A stretch of DNA of 64,000 nucleotides, from the sequence record NC_071015.1. One strand, 5' to 3'. A program made the position numbers and the translations under genes. Position 1 is the first letter of the stretch, and every line of letters starts with the position of its first letter. Of this stretch, positions 18,108 to 53,957 are shown piece after piece. The notes below the pieces were generated by a model that saw only the letters and a list, made by a program, of their open reading frames with translations, ran no database searches and had not been told where the DNA came from.

Positions 18108-18896
18108 TTATTCGCTAAACGGATCGAATTTCTCTTCTTGTGCGGGTTGTGAATTATTGGTTTCTACTTTATTCACAGTGCCGTTAAATTCAAATTGATT
18201 GTCCGTGATCTCATTGATCAAAGCAATCTCCTCTTTGGTGATCAGCTCGTTGCGCGCATTCTTATACAGAATAGCTTCAACTTGTTTAAGCAGATCTCCG
18301 TCCGGTTGAATCGGCTGACCTTTATACGTATAGGTATCACGAATATAGATCACCTGCTTCACAACCGTTGGATCGATACCTTTGGAGAGATAGTACTCGT
18401 AAGGAACCAATGCGGTCAGGGTATCGTAATCCGGGTTCTGTTGAGCAACCCCGCTCAGAATACTTGACAGAGAAGTCATGATCTGATCCACTTCATCCTT
18501 ATTAGGGATGTTTGCCGCATGTGACGCCGTGCGGGTGTACTGATCAAAGATGGCCTGCTGATTCGCGTTCAGGTCCATGTCGATGAACTTACGGATCAAC
18601 ACCACCGGCTGCTGATCGTCGTTCAGAATGATCACGCCTTTGGTGTAGCCATCAGTCAGTTTGTTCCACGCTTCCTGGTTAAAGTAGTTACGCCCACTGA
18701 CATTGCCAATGGCAAACTGTACCAACCAGTGTTCCACGAAATACTGTTCATCCATCAGAACGTATTCAATAAACTCGCCGTCCTGGGTTTGGATCACCGT
18801 TTTACCGTTGATCTCTACACTTCTGATACTCCCCAGCAGATCAACCAGCTTGCTGTGTTTGGAAACATCAATACCTTCAAATACATTAGCGGACAT
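18108..18896 (-). CDS. Hypothetical protein in the core block
   Basis: 262-aa ORF in the operon. Confidence 0.7.
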   Translation of the reverse strand: MSANVFEGIDVSKHSKLVDLLGSIRSVEINGKTVIQTQDGEFIEYVLMDEQYFVEHWLVQFAIGNVSGRNYFNQEAWNKLTDGYTKGVIILNDDQQPVVLIRKFIDMDLNANQQAIFDQYTRTASHAANIPNKDEVDQIMTSLSSILSGVAQQNPDYDTLTALVPYEYYLSKGIDPTVVKQVIYIRDTYTYKGQPIQPDGDLLKQVEAILYKNARNELITKEEIALINEITDNQFEFNGTVNKVETNNSQPAQEEKFDPFSE

Positions 18897-19329
18897 TGTT
18901 TAGCGCCCTTCCTTCATCAACTAACTTGTATGTTTCGCCGTTGATCAATACCGACTTAGCCAGATCGTAAGTCTTCCCATCTTGGGCAACGACACCTGAA
19001 AGCCGAAGAGTGAACATTTTATCGCCCTCTTTTTCCCGGCTCGATTTTGCTTCAACAGAAGCACTATCAAAAATTTGCAATAAATACTCGGTCAGGTTTT
19101 TCTTTATGTCTTCCAGGAACCGTTCTTCGCTTCCTTTGTCATCCTGATGTTTCGCCATCACATATTGATAGCTGTGAATATTTCGCAGTACGATACATTG
19201 ATCAATTCGGTTGGCGAACCAATACGCCATCGCTCGATCAATCTTAACAGACGGTTCGGTAATAAACCCTACTGTGTCCATTGTTGCAACAACACCTTTT
19301 GCCATCTTAGTATTCTCCAATAGAGACAA
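18886..19329 (-). CDS. Hypothetical protein in the core block
   Basis: 147-aa ORF with RBS GGAG. Confidence 0.7.
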   Translation of the reverse strand: MSLLENTKMAKGVVATMDTVGFITEPSVKIDRAMAYWFANRIDQCIVLRNIHSYQYVMAKHQDDKGSEERFLEDIKKNLTEYLLQIFDSASVEAKSSREKEGDKMFTLRLSGVVAQDGKTYDLAKSVLINGETYKLVDEGRALNNVR

Positions 19330-19399: not shown

Positions 19400-19555
19400 T
19401 TATCTGTTGCGCGTTGCCATTTGACGGTTTGCATTGCGGTAACGGATGATCTGGTCTCTGATGCCATAATAAAACGCACCACCAAATACCAGGGCACCAA
19501 CACCCGTAAGAAATGCAGAAACAATAGCTACGCCAGTTGAATCGAATAAGTGCAT
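19400..19555 (-). CDS. Small single-pass membrane protein (51 aa), absent from the ORF track
   Basis: Manual translation MHLFDSTGVAIVSAFLTGVGALVFGGAFYYGIRDQIIRYRNANRQMATRNR*; RBS GGGGT; hydrophobic helix followed by a basic tail. Confidence 0.65.
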   Translation of the reverse strand: MHLFDSTGVAIVSAFLTGVGALVFGGAFYYGIRDQIIRYRNANRQMATRNR

Positions 19556-19644: not shown

Positions 19645-20382
19645 TTAGTCTTTACACTCGTCCCACGTTTCTTTGCACAGTACCACTGATTCGGGAAGTT
19701 TACCGTCATCAAACAGTTCTTTAATGACAGGGTAAATCACAGCTGCCTGTTCCCCGTAACACAGTGAGACGTGCAGTAACAGACCATCAAAAGAATGCTG
19801 GAAACCACCTTCCTTCAGTTCTTTATGACGAGCCTGGACAGCAGGGGAATCCAGTTCTAACGCACACGCACGCCAGCGGGAACCGGGATCGCCCAACATT
19901 TTTACTCCTACAACTTTGGCAGTATATACCTTATCGTTTTTGGTAGGGTAGACGTCTGGGTTACGCTTATCGTACATAATCGTGGAATGCAACCGATTAA
20001 TGGGGATAAGATCAGCTCCTTCTGGTAATGCGGGGACAATCGCCCCATACAGCTTAGACCCACTACCCAGGTCTACTTGCAATTCAGCGTATCCGTGACC
20101 ACTCATTAATTTCTTCACCTTTATGACTGTTTCGTTGGTCAGCCCAGCCTGGGCACTTTCAAGACAATCGGCAATATGCTTGGTCAGGGCGGTTTCGCTA
20201 CCCTTGTGCTTTTCTTTAAAACGATCAAGCAAAATTGCCAGAAGTATTTCTTCTGTCACACCATTGGTAGTGAATTCAATTTTTGCCTGACGAACATTAT
20301 CGTTGTCATATACTTTATACTGATCCACATCGTCAGTCTTTCGTCTGACCTTTACGAGCTCAGTTTGATGGACAATTGGCAT
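19645..20382 (-). CDS. 2H phosphodiesterase, Acb1/T4 57B-like, with an N-terminal Tad1-like extension
   Basis: LHSTIMY and LHVSLCY are the two H-x-T/S catalytic motifs. ELDSPAVQARH resembles Acb1 VLDSEYLRCRH (recalled). The N-terminus has NGVTEEILLAILLDRF. Confidence 0.8.
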   Translation of the reverse strand: MPIVHQTELVKVRRKTDDVDQYKVYDNDNVRQAKIEFTTNGVTEEILLAILLDRFKEKHKGSETALTKHIADCLESAQAGLTNETVIKVKKLMSGHGYAELQVDLGSGSKLYGAIVPALPEGADLIPINRLHSTIMYDKRNPDVYPTKNDKVYTAKVVGVKMLGDPGSRWRACALELDSPAVQARHKELKEGGFQHSFDGLLLHVSLCYGEQAAVIYPVIKELFDDGKLPESVVLCKETWDECKD

Positions 20383-20548
20383 CTGGTGTTTCCTTGCCCA
20401 TGTCGATGATGAACTGACGAGTTTGTTCGCGAGTCATCCCTTGGGGTGGGTAAATGGTTTCGGAATTGAGGGCTTTATCCATTCGTTCAATATCAATAAT
20501 CACGGTAGGTTCTGGATTAGTCATTTGTTTTATCCAAAAAAAAAACAA
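20360..20548 (-). CDS. Small hypothetical protein overlapping the start of the Acb1-like gene
   Basis: About 54 aa from MTNPEP; the stop overlaps the downstream start region. Confidence 0.5.
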   Translation of the reverse strand: MFFFWIKQMTNPEPTVIIDIERMDKALNSETIYPPQGMTREQTRQFIIDMGKETPDANCPSN

Positions 20549-20588
20549 AGGTAAGGTAACGGGACATTACTGCCCCGTTACACTTTAA

Positions 20589-21254
20589 TTACTGATCACT
20601 TTCTTCCTGGGCTTTCTTACGCAGTTCTTCCACCTCTTCCACGCTCAGAATGTTCCCATTGATGGTGCTCGTTGGGTCAAACAGGTTCTTCGCAATGTGC
20701 AAGTTGGTTGCCTGCCAAGTACGGTGAATATCCACACGCTCGGAGAACGACAGATGCGACAAGGTATCACGAGAGGAGTTGAAGATAGTACGGTTCAACG
20801 TATTTTCTTCTTGATCGTAAATCACCTTTCCGTCAATTGCCCGGTTATAGAAATAGTTCTCACGTTCGATACCCGAACAGAGTTCATTAAAGTCACCGTC
20901 ATACCCAGAAACCCGATCTTGTTGATACAGGTCCATCAGTAATGGGTTGGCCATAATGTAATCTCGCATGAAACCAGTCGCCTGTTGCTGGTACTGGACT
21001 TCCGAGAGATAACCAATTTCAAACCGTCCAACGAACTGTCCGTCTTTACCATTGATACGGTTACTGAATTCCCACATACGGCTATTCATAAACGTTTTGT
21101 GGGCTTCTTTCACCGACTCCAAGGTTTCCCCTAACCAGCCCGTCAGATTGTCGTACTTCTGATACAGGTTGGTCATGTAGTTATTCAAGGCACTGGCGCT
21201 ACTGTCCGTTAATGAGCCACTGGAGCCTCGAACAAAAGCACTTGTTACATTCAC
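20589..21254 (-). CDS. Core protein downstream of the nvRNAP beta-prime N subunit
   Basis: 221 aa, abuts the beta-prime gene; YIMANP motif. May correspond to phiKZ gp59 by position (unverified). Confidence 0.6.
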   Translation of the reverse strand: MNVTSAFVRGSSGSLTDSSASALNNYMTNLYQKYDNLTGWLGETLESVKEAHKTFMNSRMWEFSNRINGKDGQFVGRFEIGYLSEVQYQQQATGFMRDYIMANPLLMDLYQQDRVSGYDGDFNELCSGIERENYFYNRAIDGKVIYDQEENTLNRTIFNSSRDTLSHLSFSERVDIHRTWQATNLHIAKNLFDPTSTINGNILSVEEVEELRKKAQEESDQ

Positions 21255-22939: not shown

Positions 22940-24850
22940 TTAGTAATGGCTGTAACCGCCGTGCAGACCAATGGTGTTCGCCTGCATGTTCTGGTTGATC
23001 ATTGCGGTAATCGCGTAGTTCAGGTAATCGTTGTTGCTGTTCATGCTCCACATGGAGGCCATGTTAGAACCGGACAGAGACAGGACGCCAGCGTGTGCCA
23101 TTGCCTGAGCGAAGGTATTGAAGAAGGCGTTTTCCCAGATCAGACGACGGTTCCAACCTTCTACGATCACGTTTGCACCGAACAGCTGGTTCAGACGAGT
23201 GAAGATGTTGAACTGACGTACTTTCAGGTTGTCGCCACCCAGGAAACCGTTCACCAGACCCTGGTACTCGTGGATCGCTGATTCGTTGTTGCCGTAGTAC
23301 TGCTCCTGACGCAGGAACATGCCGTCAACTTCGGCCAGGTCGAACCATTTGCCATCTTTGCCCTGTGCGATACCGGCCGGCAGCATGATGTTGGTTGCTT
23401 TCAGGATCGCTTCACCCGGTGCCCAGTCTTTACGCGGATCGCGGTTAGCCAGGCTAGCGTTTTTCGCCGCCAGTTTGCTGAACTCACCTTTGGACAGAAC
23501 GTCCAGCAGATTGATCAGTGCACGGTGGTAGGTAGAGCTGGACGGTTTGGAAACCAGGTTCCACCAGAAGTCGCTGTTCGCAACGTCACGGCTGAAGGTT
23601 GCCAGATCCAGAACGTATACCGCGTTCGGCGCAACATAGGTGCTCAGCCACTGGTTAACAACCTGAGTGTTCAGGATGTTTTTGTCAGTGATGAACTGTG
23701 CAGTACCGTACGCACCCTGCAGAACCTGCGACAGGTAGAAGTTGAAGTTACCGATGTTACCACGGTTACCCACTTCTTTACCGCGCAGCGCTTCGGCGAA
23801 GTAGTTCGGCTGGTTAGCACCGATTGCACCGTACAGGCCCAGGAGTGCGGTCAGCATGCTGTTGTTGTTGTTCAGGGTTTCGCCCGGAACGGTAACACCA
23901 GTGGAGATAACCGGTACCAGAGGACCGACAACACGACCCGGGTTCTGCGCACGCGCTTGACCGAACTGAGACACCGACATCGCTTCCAGGCTTACGGTCA
24001 TGTAGTTGGTGGCTACAGAGCGGGTCTGAGAACTGTTCGGGTTCTGCGTGTTGTTTTTGTTGGTGGTGGAGATTTTCACCGCCAGGTTGTACGGGGTCGG
24101 CTGGCCGTCGATGGTCAGACGGTGTACCGGTTCGATACGGGCTACTGCTGCGTCGTCTTTGCCGAACATGTTACCGTCTTTGAACGGGTTAGGCATGTCC
24201 AGGTTCATGACCGTCAGATCCAGGTAGGCGATGTTCAGCAGCGCGGTGTGCCATTCTTTCAGAATGGAGGTACGCACGTCGATGATCATGTCTTCGTATT
24301 TGACGGAGTTTTTCACGAACGGTTCCAGATCCAGAACAGTCGGGGCCAGGATGATGACCTTTTCCATCTGCTTGCCGTCAACGTAGCCGTACTGCGTTTT
24401 CACTTTTTCCAGCAGCTGCATGTCCATGAAAGACGTGGCCGGTTTGGCGATACCGCGCGGTACAGATTCGTTTTGCAGGTAGATGGATTCGGTGACTTCG
24501 GTCACGCCTGCTTTGTAGAACAGAACCGGCATAACGTAAACGCGTGCGCCGATCACAGTTGACAGGGTGATGCCCGGCAGCTGAGGAGAGATGTCCGGCG
24601 TCATGTTCTGCACGTTTTTCGGCAGCGTCATTTTCTGCGCTTCGGAGGCGGTGTTTTTGTTCAGCGCTTTCAGAACTTCTTCGACACTTTTAACAACGTC
24701 GTTCACTTCGGTGATGCTGTTGTTGGAAGAGATGAGGTTCTGCGAAGTCAGCAGCGCGAACAGTGGGTTGTTTTTATCCACGGAGTTTTTACCTGCGTTA
24801 TTGTTGTTGGAAGAATTCTGGGATTCGTTGTTTAAAGAATCGAGAGACAT
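22940..24850 (-). CDS. chmA: Chimallin, major phage-nucleus shell protein
   Basis: 636 aa with an N/S-rich N-terminal arm and strong high-expression codon bias. It lies between the DNA polymerase region and the beta-prime N gene, as in known nucleus-forming phages. Confidence 0.85.
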   Translation of the reverse strand: MSLDSLNNESQNSSNNNNAGKNSVDKNNPLFALLTSQNLISSNNSITEVNDVVKSVEEVLKALNKNTASEAQKMTLPKNVQNMTPDISPQLPGITLSTVIGARVYVMPVLFYKAGVTEVTESIYLQNESVPRGIAKPATSFMDMQLLEKVKTQYGYVDGKQMEKVIILAPTVLDLEPFVKNSVKYEDMIIDVRTSILKEWHTALLNIAYLDLTVMNLDMPNPFKDGNMFGKDDAAVARIEPVHRLTIDGQPTPYNLAVKISTTNKNNTQNPNSSQTRSVATNYMTVSLEAMSVSQFGQARAQNPGRVVGPLVPVISTGVTVPGETLNNNNSMLTALLGLYGAIGANQPNYFAEALRGKEVGNRGNIGNFNFYLSQVLQGAYGTAQFITDKNILNTQVVNQWLSTYVAPNAVYVLDLATFSRDVANSDFWWNLVSKPSSSTYHRALINLLDVLSKGEFSKLAAKNASLANRDPRKDWAPGEAILKATNIMLPAGIAQGKDGKWFDLAEVDGMFLRQEQYYGNNESAIHEYQGLVNGFLGGDNLKVRQFNIFTRLNQLFGANVIVEGWNRRLIWENAFFNTFAQAMAHAGVLSLSGSNMASMWSMNSNNDYLNYAITAMINQNMQANTIGLHGGYSHY

Positions 24851-53572: not shown

Positions 53573-53863
53573 TTACTGAATGATGGTACGAACTTTGTGA
53601 CAAGCAGCCAGCAGAGTGGTAGCGTCCCGCATTGCAGGAAGAGATGCCGCACCCATTGCACGGTTCAGACGCGTTCTGAAAAACGCTCTGAGATTATCCA
53701 ATGTGGACAGTTGATCTTCTTTAGACAGACCCACTAACTGCTCCATGATTTCACCGGCACGGAAATTCATTGTGGCGACCATGTCGGTAGCTTTCTGAGA
53801 CTGTACGTTCATTGTGTTCATGATAAATCCTCTAAGGTAGTTAAATATGTTTGTGCTATACAC
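53573..53863 (-). CDS. Small hypothetical early protein
   Basis: Start probably MNTMNV near 53821; promoter motif at 53869-53876. Confidence 0.55.
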   Translation of the reverse strand: MYSTNIFNYLRGFIMNTMNVQSQKATDMVATMNFRAGEIMEQLVGLSKEDQLSTLDNLRAFFRTRLNRAMGAASLPAMRDATTLLAACHKVRTIIQ

Positions 53864-53957
53864 ATTGGTAATATAGGTCTGAAAAGGAATCCAACTGAAT
53901 TGTGAGTAATACTTTGTAAGGCTCTATAACGAGCTATAACAGTATGCTTGCCTGTAA

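Follow-up and report, generated by a model that had tools for sequence, protein, structure and literature searches.

The fused gene

Phage proteins that neutralise nucleotide immune signals are either enzymes (Acb1, Apyc1) or sponges (Tad1, Tad2, Acb2, Acb4). The stretch of DNA described here (64,000 nucleotides of sequence record NC_071015.1, hereafter the window) carries a gene in which a module derived from each kind is joined into one polypeptide. The gene product is QYN80028.1, from Kosakonia phage Kc263, a jumbo myovirus (genus Branisovskavirus), and the window matches the Kc263 record MZ348422.1 (253,740 bp) with 100% identity; subtracting 124,000 from a position in that record gives the window position. 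The GenBank product name is "RNA 2',3'-cyclic phosphodiesterase", and the gene is not discussed in the paper that describes the phage (PMC8402661). The gene and its parts are:

19645..20382 (-): whole fused gene, ATG start, 245 codons plus stop
20107..20382 (-): Tad1-derived N-domain, residues 1-92, from profile comparisons and the AlphaFold2 model
20218..20280 (-): best-conserved Tad1-family motif, residues 35-55, from the end of beta4 through alpha1, from alignment
20116..20121 (-): Shine-Dalgarno-like AAGGTG, 9 nt before the Met93 codon, a sequence element
20104..20106 (-): Met93 codon at the fusion junction, in line with the initiating Met of each stand-alone acb1-like gene
19648..20106 (-): Acb1-family 2H phosphodiesterase domain, residues 93-245, from Pfam, phrog_755, the PDB and Foldseek
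19981..19989 (-): first catalytic motif, H132-S-T134, aligned to 7t26
19765..19773 (-): second catalytic motif, H204-V-S206, aligned to 7t26

The C-terminal Acb1 module

Residues 93-245 are a bona fide Acb1-family 2H phosphodiesterase, as a reading made from the sequence alone (the sequence-only reading) had proposed. Pfam family PF23474 (Acb1) is matched over residues 126-214 with 46.6 bits against a gathering cut-off of 27 (stand-alone acb1-like relatives score 50-54 bits), and phrog_755 is matched over residues 93-244 (E = 4e-22). A phmmer search of the PDB matches the domain to the Acb1 of Erwinia phage FBB1 (7t26) with both histidine motifs aligned. The two HxT/S motifs, which had first been picked out in the sequence-only reading, are indeed present and are invariant in all 14 aligned fused homologues.

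The predicted structure agrees. The AlphaFold2 model of the full-length protein was built from a 47-sequence alignment and has a mean predicted local distance difference test score (pLDDT) of 87.8. In a Foldseek search of the PDB with this model, Acb1 enzymes take the lead: 9q2g and 9q2y come first at 9e-9 to 7e-8 (best 9q2g, E = 8.6e-9, template-modelling score TMt 0.71), followed by 7t26 and 7t27 at 5e-7 to 3e-6 (7t26, E = 4.8e-7, TMt 0.70). LigT, Usb1 and the plant cyclic phosphodiesterase (CPDase) appear at 1e-3 or weaker, more than 1000-fold behind. The best single-domain match in BFVD is a protein of Edwardsiella phage pEt-SU that is named Acb1 in UniProt (TMt 0.94). The features of Acb1 membership are therefore all found, namely a score above the family threshold, the 2H fold with its motifs, and Acb1 enzymes as the closest solved folds; it is the architecture that differs, by an extra domain. 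By analogy with its family, the C-module would cut the cyclic di- and trinucleotide signals of CBASS-type immunity (cyclic-oligonucleotide-based antiphage signalling).

The GenBank name implies something else, an RNA-repair 2',3'-cyclic phosphodiesterase or LigT-like enzyme unconnected to immune signalling. The 2H fold is common to LigT, CPDase and Usb1, relatives are annotated "RNA ligase", and the stand-alone relatives weakly match the Pfam family 2_5_RNA_ligase2 at 12-15 bits. These scores fall far under the cut-off of 27, however, whereas Acb1 is matched at 46-54 bits; in the structure search Acb1 enzymes lead the other 2H enzymes by over three orders of magnitude in E-value; and the constant partner gene in related phages encodes a homologue of Tad1, an anti-defence protein. 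An RNA-repair role is very improbable.

The N-terminal Tad1-derived module

The N-part has no match in Pfam or NCBIfam, and none to PF24729 (the Acb2/Tad1 hairpin domain) at E <= 10; distant Tad1-like proteins (P0011-P0019) also reach just 15-22 bits on PF24729, under its cut-off of 27. From profile comparison, homology of the N-module to Tad1 is nevertheless established transitively, through the stand-alone Tad1-like proteins of other jumbo phages. The chain has the following links: i) the stand-alone proteins of phages N1M2, OBP, Sureiya, Yubaba and SXP01 belong to phrog_2428 (E ~1e-20), one of them (N1M2_39) matches the validated Tad1 of Bacillus phage SBSphiJ7 (tblastn, E = 4e-7), and hhalign joins the jumbo stand-alone proteins to SBSphiJ7 Tad1 and its kin with a probability of 99.5% (E = 2e-22); ii) hhalign joins the fused N-domains to the jumbo stand-alone proteins with a probability of 98.1% (E = 7e-14, 78 columns), and a hidden Markov model (HMM) of the fused N-domains gives the OBP/N1M2-type proteins 38-48 bits while matching 0 of 307 decoy open reading frames (ORFs); and iii) in profile searches of the PDB, the N-parts together with the stand-alone proteins find CmTad1 (8kbb) at 2e-24 and CbTad1 (7uav) at 5.5e-19, and a profile of jumbo-phage sequences only (5 fused and 9 stand-alone) finds 8kbb at 3.6e-10 and 7uav at 5e-8, the next unrelated entry standing at 0.06. 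Tad1-family HMMs built without the fused sequences give the fused ORF 36-37 bits, the highest score that any of the window's 661 ORF pieces receives (runner-up 11 bits). Direct links are weak: an HMM of core Tad1 gives the fused ORF 16.8 bits (E = 2e-4, first of the 661 pieces), and hhalign of the fused domains directly against core Tad1 gives 71.7% over 22 columns.

The motif that the sequence-only reading had recognised as Tad1-like corresponds to residues 35-55, and its kinship with Tad1 is borne out by these intermediates. F37, N40, G41, T43, E45 and R54 are common to core Tad1, the jumbo stand-alone proteins and the fused proteins. The predicted fold of the N-domain consists of beta strands at residues 3-6, 10-14, 22-26 and 31-34, then helices at 44-58 and 65-82, with a linker at 83-92. 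Within the full-length model the N-part is confidently predicted (block means 79-94), and its predicted order of four strands and two helices fits published Tad1, which has an N-terminal antiparallel beta sheet and two C-terminal helices. When this model is run through Foldseek on BFVD, its N-part finds N1M2_39 and OBP_060 (E = 3e-4).

In general databases the N-part has few visible relatives. The 100-aa N-part is too divergent for a word-indexed search, which gave no match in a set of 5.8 billion proteins. An exhaustive phmmer search against 1.84 billion representatives gave four matches, of which three are credible relatives: a fragment of a fused protein, one fused representative, and one stand-alone Tad1-like protein. 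Residues 23-71 also matched 8 of the 16 YDG repeats of a 2951-aa two-partner-secretion exoprotein (P0049, E = 9e-7), which was judged a repeat-driven chance match. A candidate second Tad1-like gene in the window, a 115-aa ORF at 53576..53923 (-), scored 8-10 bits (E = 0.02-0.08 over the 661 pieces), has no Pfam match, and was treated as noise.

Origin and distribution of the fusion

The gene arose when a tad1-like gene fused with the adjoining acb1-like gene. The two genes are adjacent but separate in 17 distinct phage genomes, that is, in at least 17 related jumbo phages (N1M2, Sureiya, Yubaba, OBP, SXP01, PS1, PS2, pAEv1810, AVP1, ACP1, CF8, D3, D6, D9, LAh10, AhC3_1 and AerS_266), and the pair is also split in the metagenomic contig L016. 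Among these, N1M2 is a phage of Klebsiella, OBP of Pseudomonas, Sureiya and Yubaba of Serratia, and SXP01 of Shewanella, and in all five the pair lies in one reading frame, parted by 1-2 stop codons. For N1M2, Sureiya, SXP01 and OBP the gap holds in addition just 0-2 sense codons; in AerS_266 the genes abut with overlapping stop and start, and the record labels them "Anti-Thoeris" and "Anti-CBASS nuclease". Such tight spacing suggests that the split pair is translationally coupled.

The fused form occurs only in the lineages of Kc263 and of Erwinia phage AH04 (58% identical), as 15 protein clusters of 240-245 aa in two subclades. A sequencing or assembly artefact was considered as the source of the fusion and rejected, because the 15 clusters (51-99% identical), which come from independent metagenomes, all have the same architecture and junction. 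No description of a Tad1-Acb1 fusion was found in a literature search, an absence that is no proof of novelty.

The site is fixed. All relatives examined share the order virion RNA polymerase beta', a gene of ~220 aa (phrog_3254), Tad1-like/Acb1-like, a small ORF, a virion protein gene, a 262-aa gene, and SbcD. In Kc263 the fused gene lies beside the virion RNA polymerase beta' gene, and a homologue of chimallin, the shell protein of the phage nucleus, is encoded two genes upstream, so that the placement of the gene in the nucleus core block, claimed from the sequence at the outset, holds good.

22940..24850 (-): chimallin homologue, annotated "hypothetical protein", 636 aa, with 83% identity to the PF25677-bearing product of L007

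The local copy of Pfam gave no match for this homologue. Chimalliviruses carry a conserved tad1-acb1 pair whose site, beside the genes for the nucleus and the virion RNA polymerase, is fixed. Their DNA is shielded; the cytoplasm, in which small-molecule signals act, is not.

Loss of the sponge pocket

Tad1 is a homo-oligomer, a hexamer arranged as a trimer of dimers, that sequesters signals. F82, N92, R109 and R113 of CbTad1 bind gcADPR (glycocyclic ADP-ribose) and cGAMP (cyclic GMP-AMP), and binding of both is severely reduced in the double mutants R109A/R113A and F82A/N92A; the ligand is covered by a lid (residues 116-122) and by the beta4-alpha1 loop, which seals the pocket (10.1101/2023.11.15.567273). 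R90 and T97 serve both in trinucleotide binding and in keeping the hexamer intact, and in CmTad1 the hexamer is held by R88/T95 and an M102/W103 patch (10.1101/2023.11.15.567273). The pocket columns were mapped through the PDB profile alignment and counted in three groups: core Tad1 (10 proteins), jumbo stand-alone (17) and fused (14).

To judge from these columns, the fused proteins have a dismantled form of the canonical sponge pocket, which the stand-alone jumbo versions retain. The Q-x-G (beta4-alpha1) loop is present in 27/27 stand-alone and 0/14 fused proteins, 8-9 residues having gone after F37, and the G-V..T C-terminal lid shows the same 27/27 against 0/14; the shortened ligand loop and missing C-terminal tail that had been suspected in Kc263 are therefore a property of the whole fused group. 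The N92 position, at which the alignment is uncertain by one residue, has Asn in all 27 stand-alone proteins vs 3 of the 14 fused, and the R109 position has Arg in 26/27 vs 1/14. The R113 position is Arg in 27/27 stand-alone proteins and Lys (10/14) or Arg (4/14) in the fused, and the position of the first lid Arg is Lys in 14/14 fused. F82 is variable in every group. The trinucleotide-site pair differs from core Tad1 in the jumbo stand-alone proteins as well: at R90, Arg is found in 9/10 core Tad1, is replaced already in the jumbo stand-alone proteins, and gives way to various residues (A, V, P, L, K and others) in the fused; at T97, Thr in 9/10 core Tad1 is E or D in the jumbo stand-alone and D or E in the fused proteins. 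Helix alpha2 of the fused N-domain is shortened and runs into the linker. With loop, lid and most pocket residues lost, a canonical sponge function of the N-module is very unlikely.

A less canonical form of binding has to be considered. The N-domain might bind cyclic oligonucleotides or gcADPR in an open, lid-less pocket and either feed them to the tethered enzyme or sequester them, making the protein a capture-and-cleave enzyme or a dual anti-Thoeris and anti-CBASS factor. The fold core is invariant across Tad1, jumbo stand-alone and fused proteins (F37, N40-G41, T43, E45, R54); basic residues are kept at R113 (K/R in 14/14) and at the first lid Arg (K in 14/14); the N-domain is under purifying selection, as described below; and two-module signal-neutralising fusions with dual protection are known, such as Acb4-Tad2 (10.1101/2025.07.12.664507). 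Set against this, the mutations that cripple CbTad1 fall in part on N92 and R109, whose equivalents are unconserved in the fused proteins, the F82 position is variable, loop and lid are both deleted, and the R90/T97 pair is absent. We consider open-pocket binding of this kind unlikely. The sequence-only reading had offered two mechanisms, a capture-and-cleave enzyme and a Tad1 fold reused as an oligomerisation scaffold; capture-and-cleave is the less likely of them because most of the residues and elements with which CbTad1 holds its ligand are gone, and the scaffold, though inferred, is plausible.

The junction and a possible second product

In alignments Met93 coincides with the start Met of each stand-alone acb1-like gene, and therefore marks the fusion junction and a possible internal start. 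In the Kc263 subclade, AAGGTG or AAGGTA occurs within the 15-20 nt ahead of Met93, 9 nt from the ATG, so that the linker overlaps a site resembling a ribosome-binding site. In the relative L007 this element also stands ahead of the start codon of the Acb1-only gene; in the AH04 subclade it is less clear. Internal initiation at Met93, yielding free Acb1 from the same mRNA, is possible on this evidence.

The two modules look loosely tethered in the models. The linker has a pLDDT of ~70 and the full-length AlphaFold2 model a predicted template-modelling score (pTM) of 0.60, and the orientation of the domains differs from that in the BFVD model of the AH04 protein (root-mean-square deviation 14 A at 58% identity).

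Selection on the N-module, and its loss

The N-module is under purifying selection, with a looser constraint than that on the enzyme module. The ratio of nonsynonymous to synonymous substitution rates (dN/dS) was computed for Kc263 pairwise with three fused relatives (L012-L014), in which all 245 codons align without insertions or deletions. It is 0.22-0.33 for residues 1-92 (dS 0.5-0.75) and 0.05-0.09 for residues 93-245 (dS 0.5-2.7). The N-module is free of indels within the Kc263 subclade, and a single 4-residue indel separates the two subclades, which are ~50% diverged. There are no stops or frameshifts in the 15 fused clusters, and 18 N-domain residues are invariant in 14/14 aligned fused proteins from both subclades.

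In three relatives the module has nevertheless been lost. L007, L015 and L017 are Acb1-only: an intact acb1 gene is preceded by short, non-coding remnants of the N-module. The matches of the remnants to N-domain coding DNA beat 200/200 shuffles in each of the three contigs, and one remnant scores 17.4 bits on the fused-N HMM. A neighbour-joining tree of Acb1 domains, drawn with no bootstrap, places all three within the fused clade. The parsimonious reading, though not proven, is one fusion followed by at least three losses by deletion. Absence of the N-module from three relatives within the fused clade marks it as an accessory and not an essential part.

These observations bear on the proposal that the N-domain is functionless, the protein a plain Acb1, and the N-part a leader that is tolerated, or just supplies a translation start, until it is deleted. 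The Acb1-only relatives, which keep non-coding remnants only, are what such a proposal would predict; the ligand pocket is dismantled; the N-domain evolves 3-5 times faster than the C-domain; and the Shine-Dalgarno-like element and Met93 are preserved, Met93 being the sole start in L007. A functionless leader is hard to reconcile, however, with a dN/dS well under 1 (0.22-0.33 at dS 0.5-0.75), with 15 clusters lacking stops and frameshifts, with one 4-residue indel between subclades ~50% diverged, or with the 18 invariant residues. The overlap of the first 8 codons with an upstream ORF accounts for a small part of the constraint only. It is improbable that the N-domain does nothing.

A model for the fused protein

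The evidence leads, with moderate confidence, to an Acb1 nuclease with an accessory, probably oligomerising, Tad1-derived domain, born of the fusion of neighbouring genes. In this model the polypeptide would be a two-module counter-defence protein. The C-module, its catalytic motifs intact, would degrade cyclic oligonucleotide signals. The N-module would keep the core of the Tad1 fold, the small beta sheet and two-helix hairpin from which Tad1 oligomers are built, and would no longer enclose a ligand; it would instead serve as an accessory handle on a flexible linker of ~12 residues, most probably as an oligomerisation platform that gathers at least two Acb1 domains. Acb1 is described as a monomeric enzyme (10.1101/2025.07.12.664507). 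Free Acb1 might also be made from the same mRNA through Met93.

A stronger form of the argument, that the sponge fold has been exapted, is a tentative possibility: the Tad1-derived domain would have given up sequestering signals and would assemble Acb1 into a dimer or higher oligomer, or would pre-bind the substrate in its open pocket and feed the tethered active site. If this were so, nucleus-forming phages would degrade signals with a changed potency or over a changed range of substrates, the protein would be the first sponge-enzyme chimera among anti-signalling proteins, and there would be a hint that the Tad1-like and Acb1 proteins which other jumbo phages make separately work in physical association. 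An N-domain that oligomerises the enzyme or feeds it substrate would also represent a new way of tuning a signal-degrading enzyme.

Several points weigh against the accessory, oligomerising domain. First, the residues that hold the Tad1 hexamer (CmTad1 R88/T95 and M102/W103) are unconserved in the fused and the jumbo stand-alone proteins, so that at most a dimer, or a different interface, is expected. Second, the scaffold role is pure inference. Third, a domain of little use could also be lost repeatedly, as the N-module has been. Fourth, a literature search found no assayed member of the jumbo-phage Acb1 clade. Fifth, a profile of the fused N-domains only ranks Tad1 first in the PDB, but at E = 0.4. 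Sixth, structural comparison with Tad1 gives a mixed picture: Foldseek of the isolated N-domain has no significant match and no Tad1 among its top 50 in the PDB, which for so poor a model (pLDDT 64.5) does not count as a true negative, and the full-length model finds the Tad1-like N1M2_39 and OBP_060 in BFVD.

Whatever the role of the N-module, the locus offers a natural series with three stages, the intact pair, the fusion in which the sponge pocket is dismantled, and the gene that has lost its sponge part, and so records the re-use and discard of a counter-defence module.

Comparison with known systems

The Kc263 protein resembles the Acb1 enzymes (T4 57B; Erwinia phage FBB1, 7t26/7t27; the Burkholderia phage BCSR5 phosphodiesterase, 9q2g) in passing the PF23474 threshold, in its aligned HxT/S motifs, in its best structural matches and in the equal size of the domain. 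It differs from them in being a 245-aa protein with a 92-residue N-domain, where Acb1 is described as a monomeric single domain of ~150 aa (10.1101/2025.07.12.664507), and its C-module is just 18-24% identical to the solved Acb1 enzymes. With Tad1 (SBSphiJ7 Tad1; CbTad1, 7uav; CmTad1, 8kbb) the N-domain shares a predicted order of elements, a beta sheet and then two helices, and the core motif F...NG-x-T-x-E...DR. Unlike Tad1 it lacks the beta4-alpha1 loop, the lid, the pocket Asn and first Arg, the Arg/Thr pair of the trinucleotide site and hexamer, and a PF24729 match.

The closest parallel in arrangement is the split pair of OBP, N1M2, Sureiya, Yubaba, SXP01 and the Aeromonas PS1/D3/AerS_266-type phages, which has the same syntenic site, the same two modules and the same order. 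There, however, two genes are present and the Tad1-like protein retains the loop, the Asn, both Arg and the lid, whereas Kc263 has one polypeptide with a truncated Tad1. The fusions known to date are of sponge with sponge (Acb4-Tad2 of Pasteurella phage Pm86, and Sequestin fusions). They likewise place two signal-neutralising modules in one polypeptide, but theirs join two intact sponges and that of Kc263 joins a degenerate sponge fold to an enzyme (10.1101/2025.07.12.664507).

A Tad1-like module of a jumbo phage joined to another module is also found in gp184 of phiKZ (PDB 8y6v chain I; residues 134-226, E = 1.6e-16 and 6e-10 in two profiles). In gp184 the Tad1-like part is C-terminal and there is no fusion to an enzyme. 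phrog_22140 and phrog_23843 are listed with this protein. Since gp184 is a protease-processed minor capsid protein of the inner capsid surface (PMC11297242), the Tad1-like module appears to be packaged in the phiKZ virion, and might be delivered with the DNA. A Tad1 homologue has been recognised in phiKZ (PMC11724313).

Neighbouring elements and annotation

Two further elements lie immediately upstream of the fused gene:

20360..20524 (-): small ORF, 54 aa, phrog_17259 (E = 5e-9), conserved, unannotated in the Kc263 record
20556..20581 (-): 11-bp G+C-rich hairpin with ten T after it, in the gap that separates the small ORF from the 221-aa phrog_3254 gene; a pattern match only

The 3' end of the small ORF and the beginning of the fused gene share 23 nt, and the small ORF is called as a gene of 45-54 aa in L007, L012-L014 and L015. 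In Sureiya_00100, P0003 and P0004 the homologous peptide forms an N-terminal extension of the Tad1-like protein; the locus therefore shuffles three modules, not two. A scan for sigma-70 promoters around the fused gene found sites no more numerous than in shuffled sequence. The hairpin may separate two transcription units, the second of which comprises the small ORF and the fused gene.

Annotation of the family would be improved by these assignments, since the records now say "RNA 2',3'-cyclic phosphodiesterase", "RNA ligase" or "ABC transporter ATPase". The last of these names looks spurious on the Tad1-like proteins (N1M2_39; SXP01), and the CbTad1 entry 7uav bears it as well. Three other product names near the fused gene look equally spurious: "Putative apolipoprotein C-I" on the 221-aa phrog_3254 protein at 20589..21254 (-), "Photosystem I reaction center subunit XII" on a 51-aa hydrophobic peptide at 19400..19555 (-), and "Putative contractile injection system" on a 139-aa phrog_3294 protein at 18886..19305 (-).

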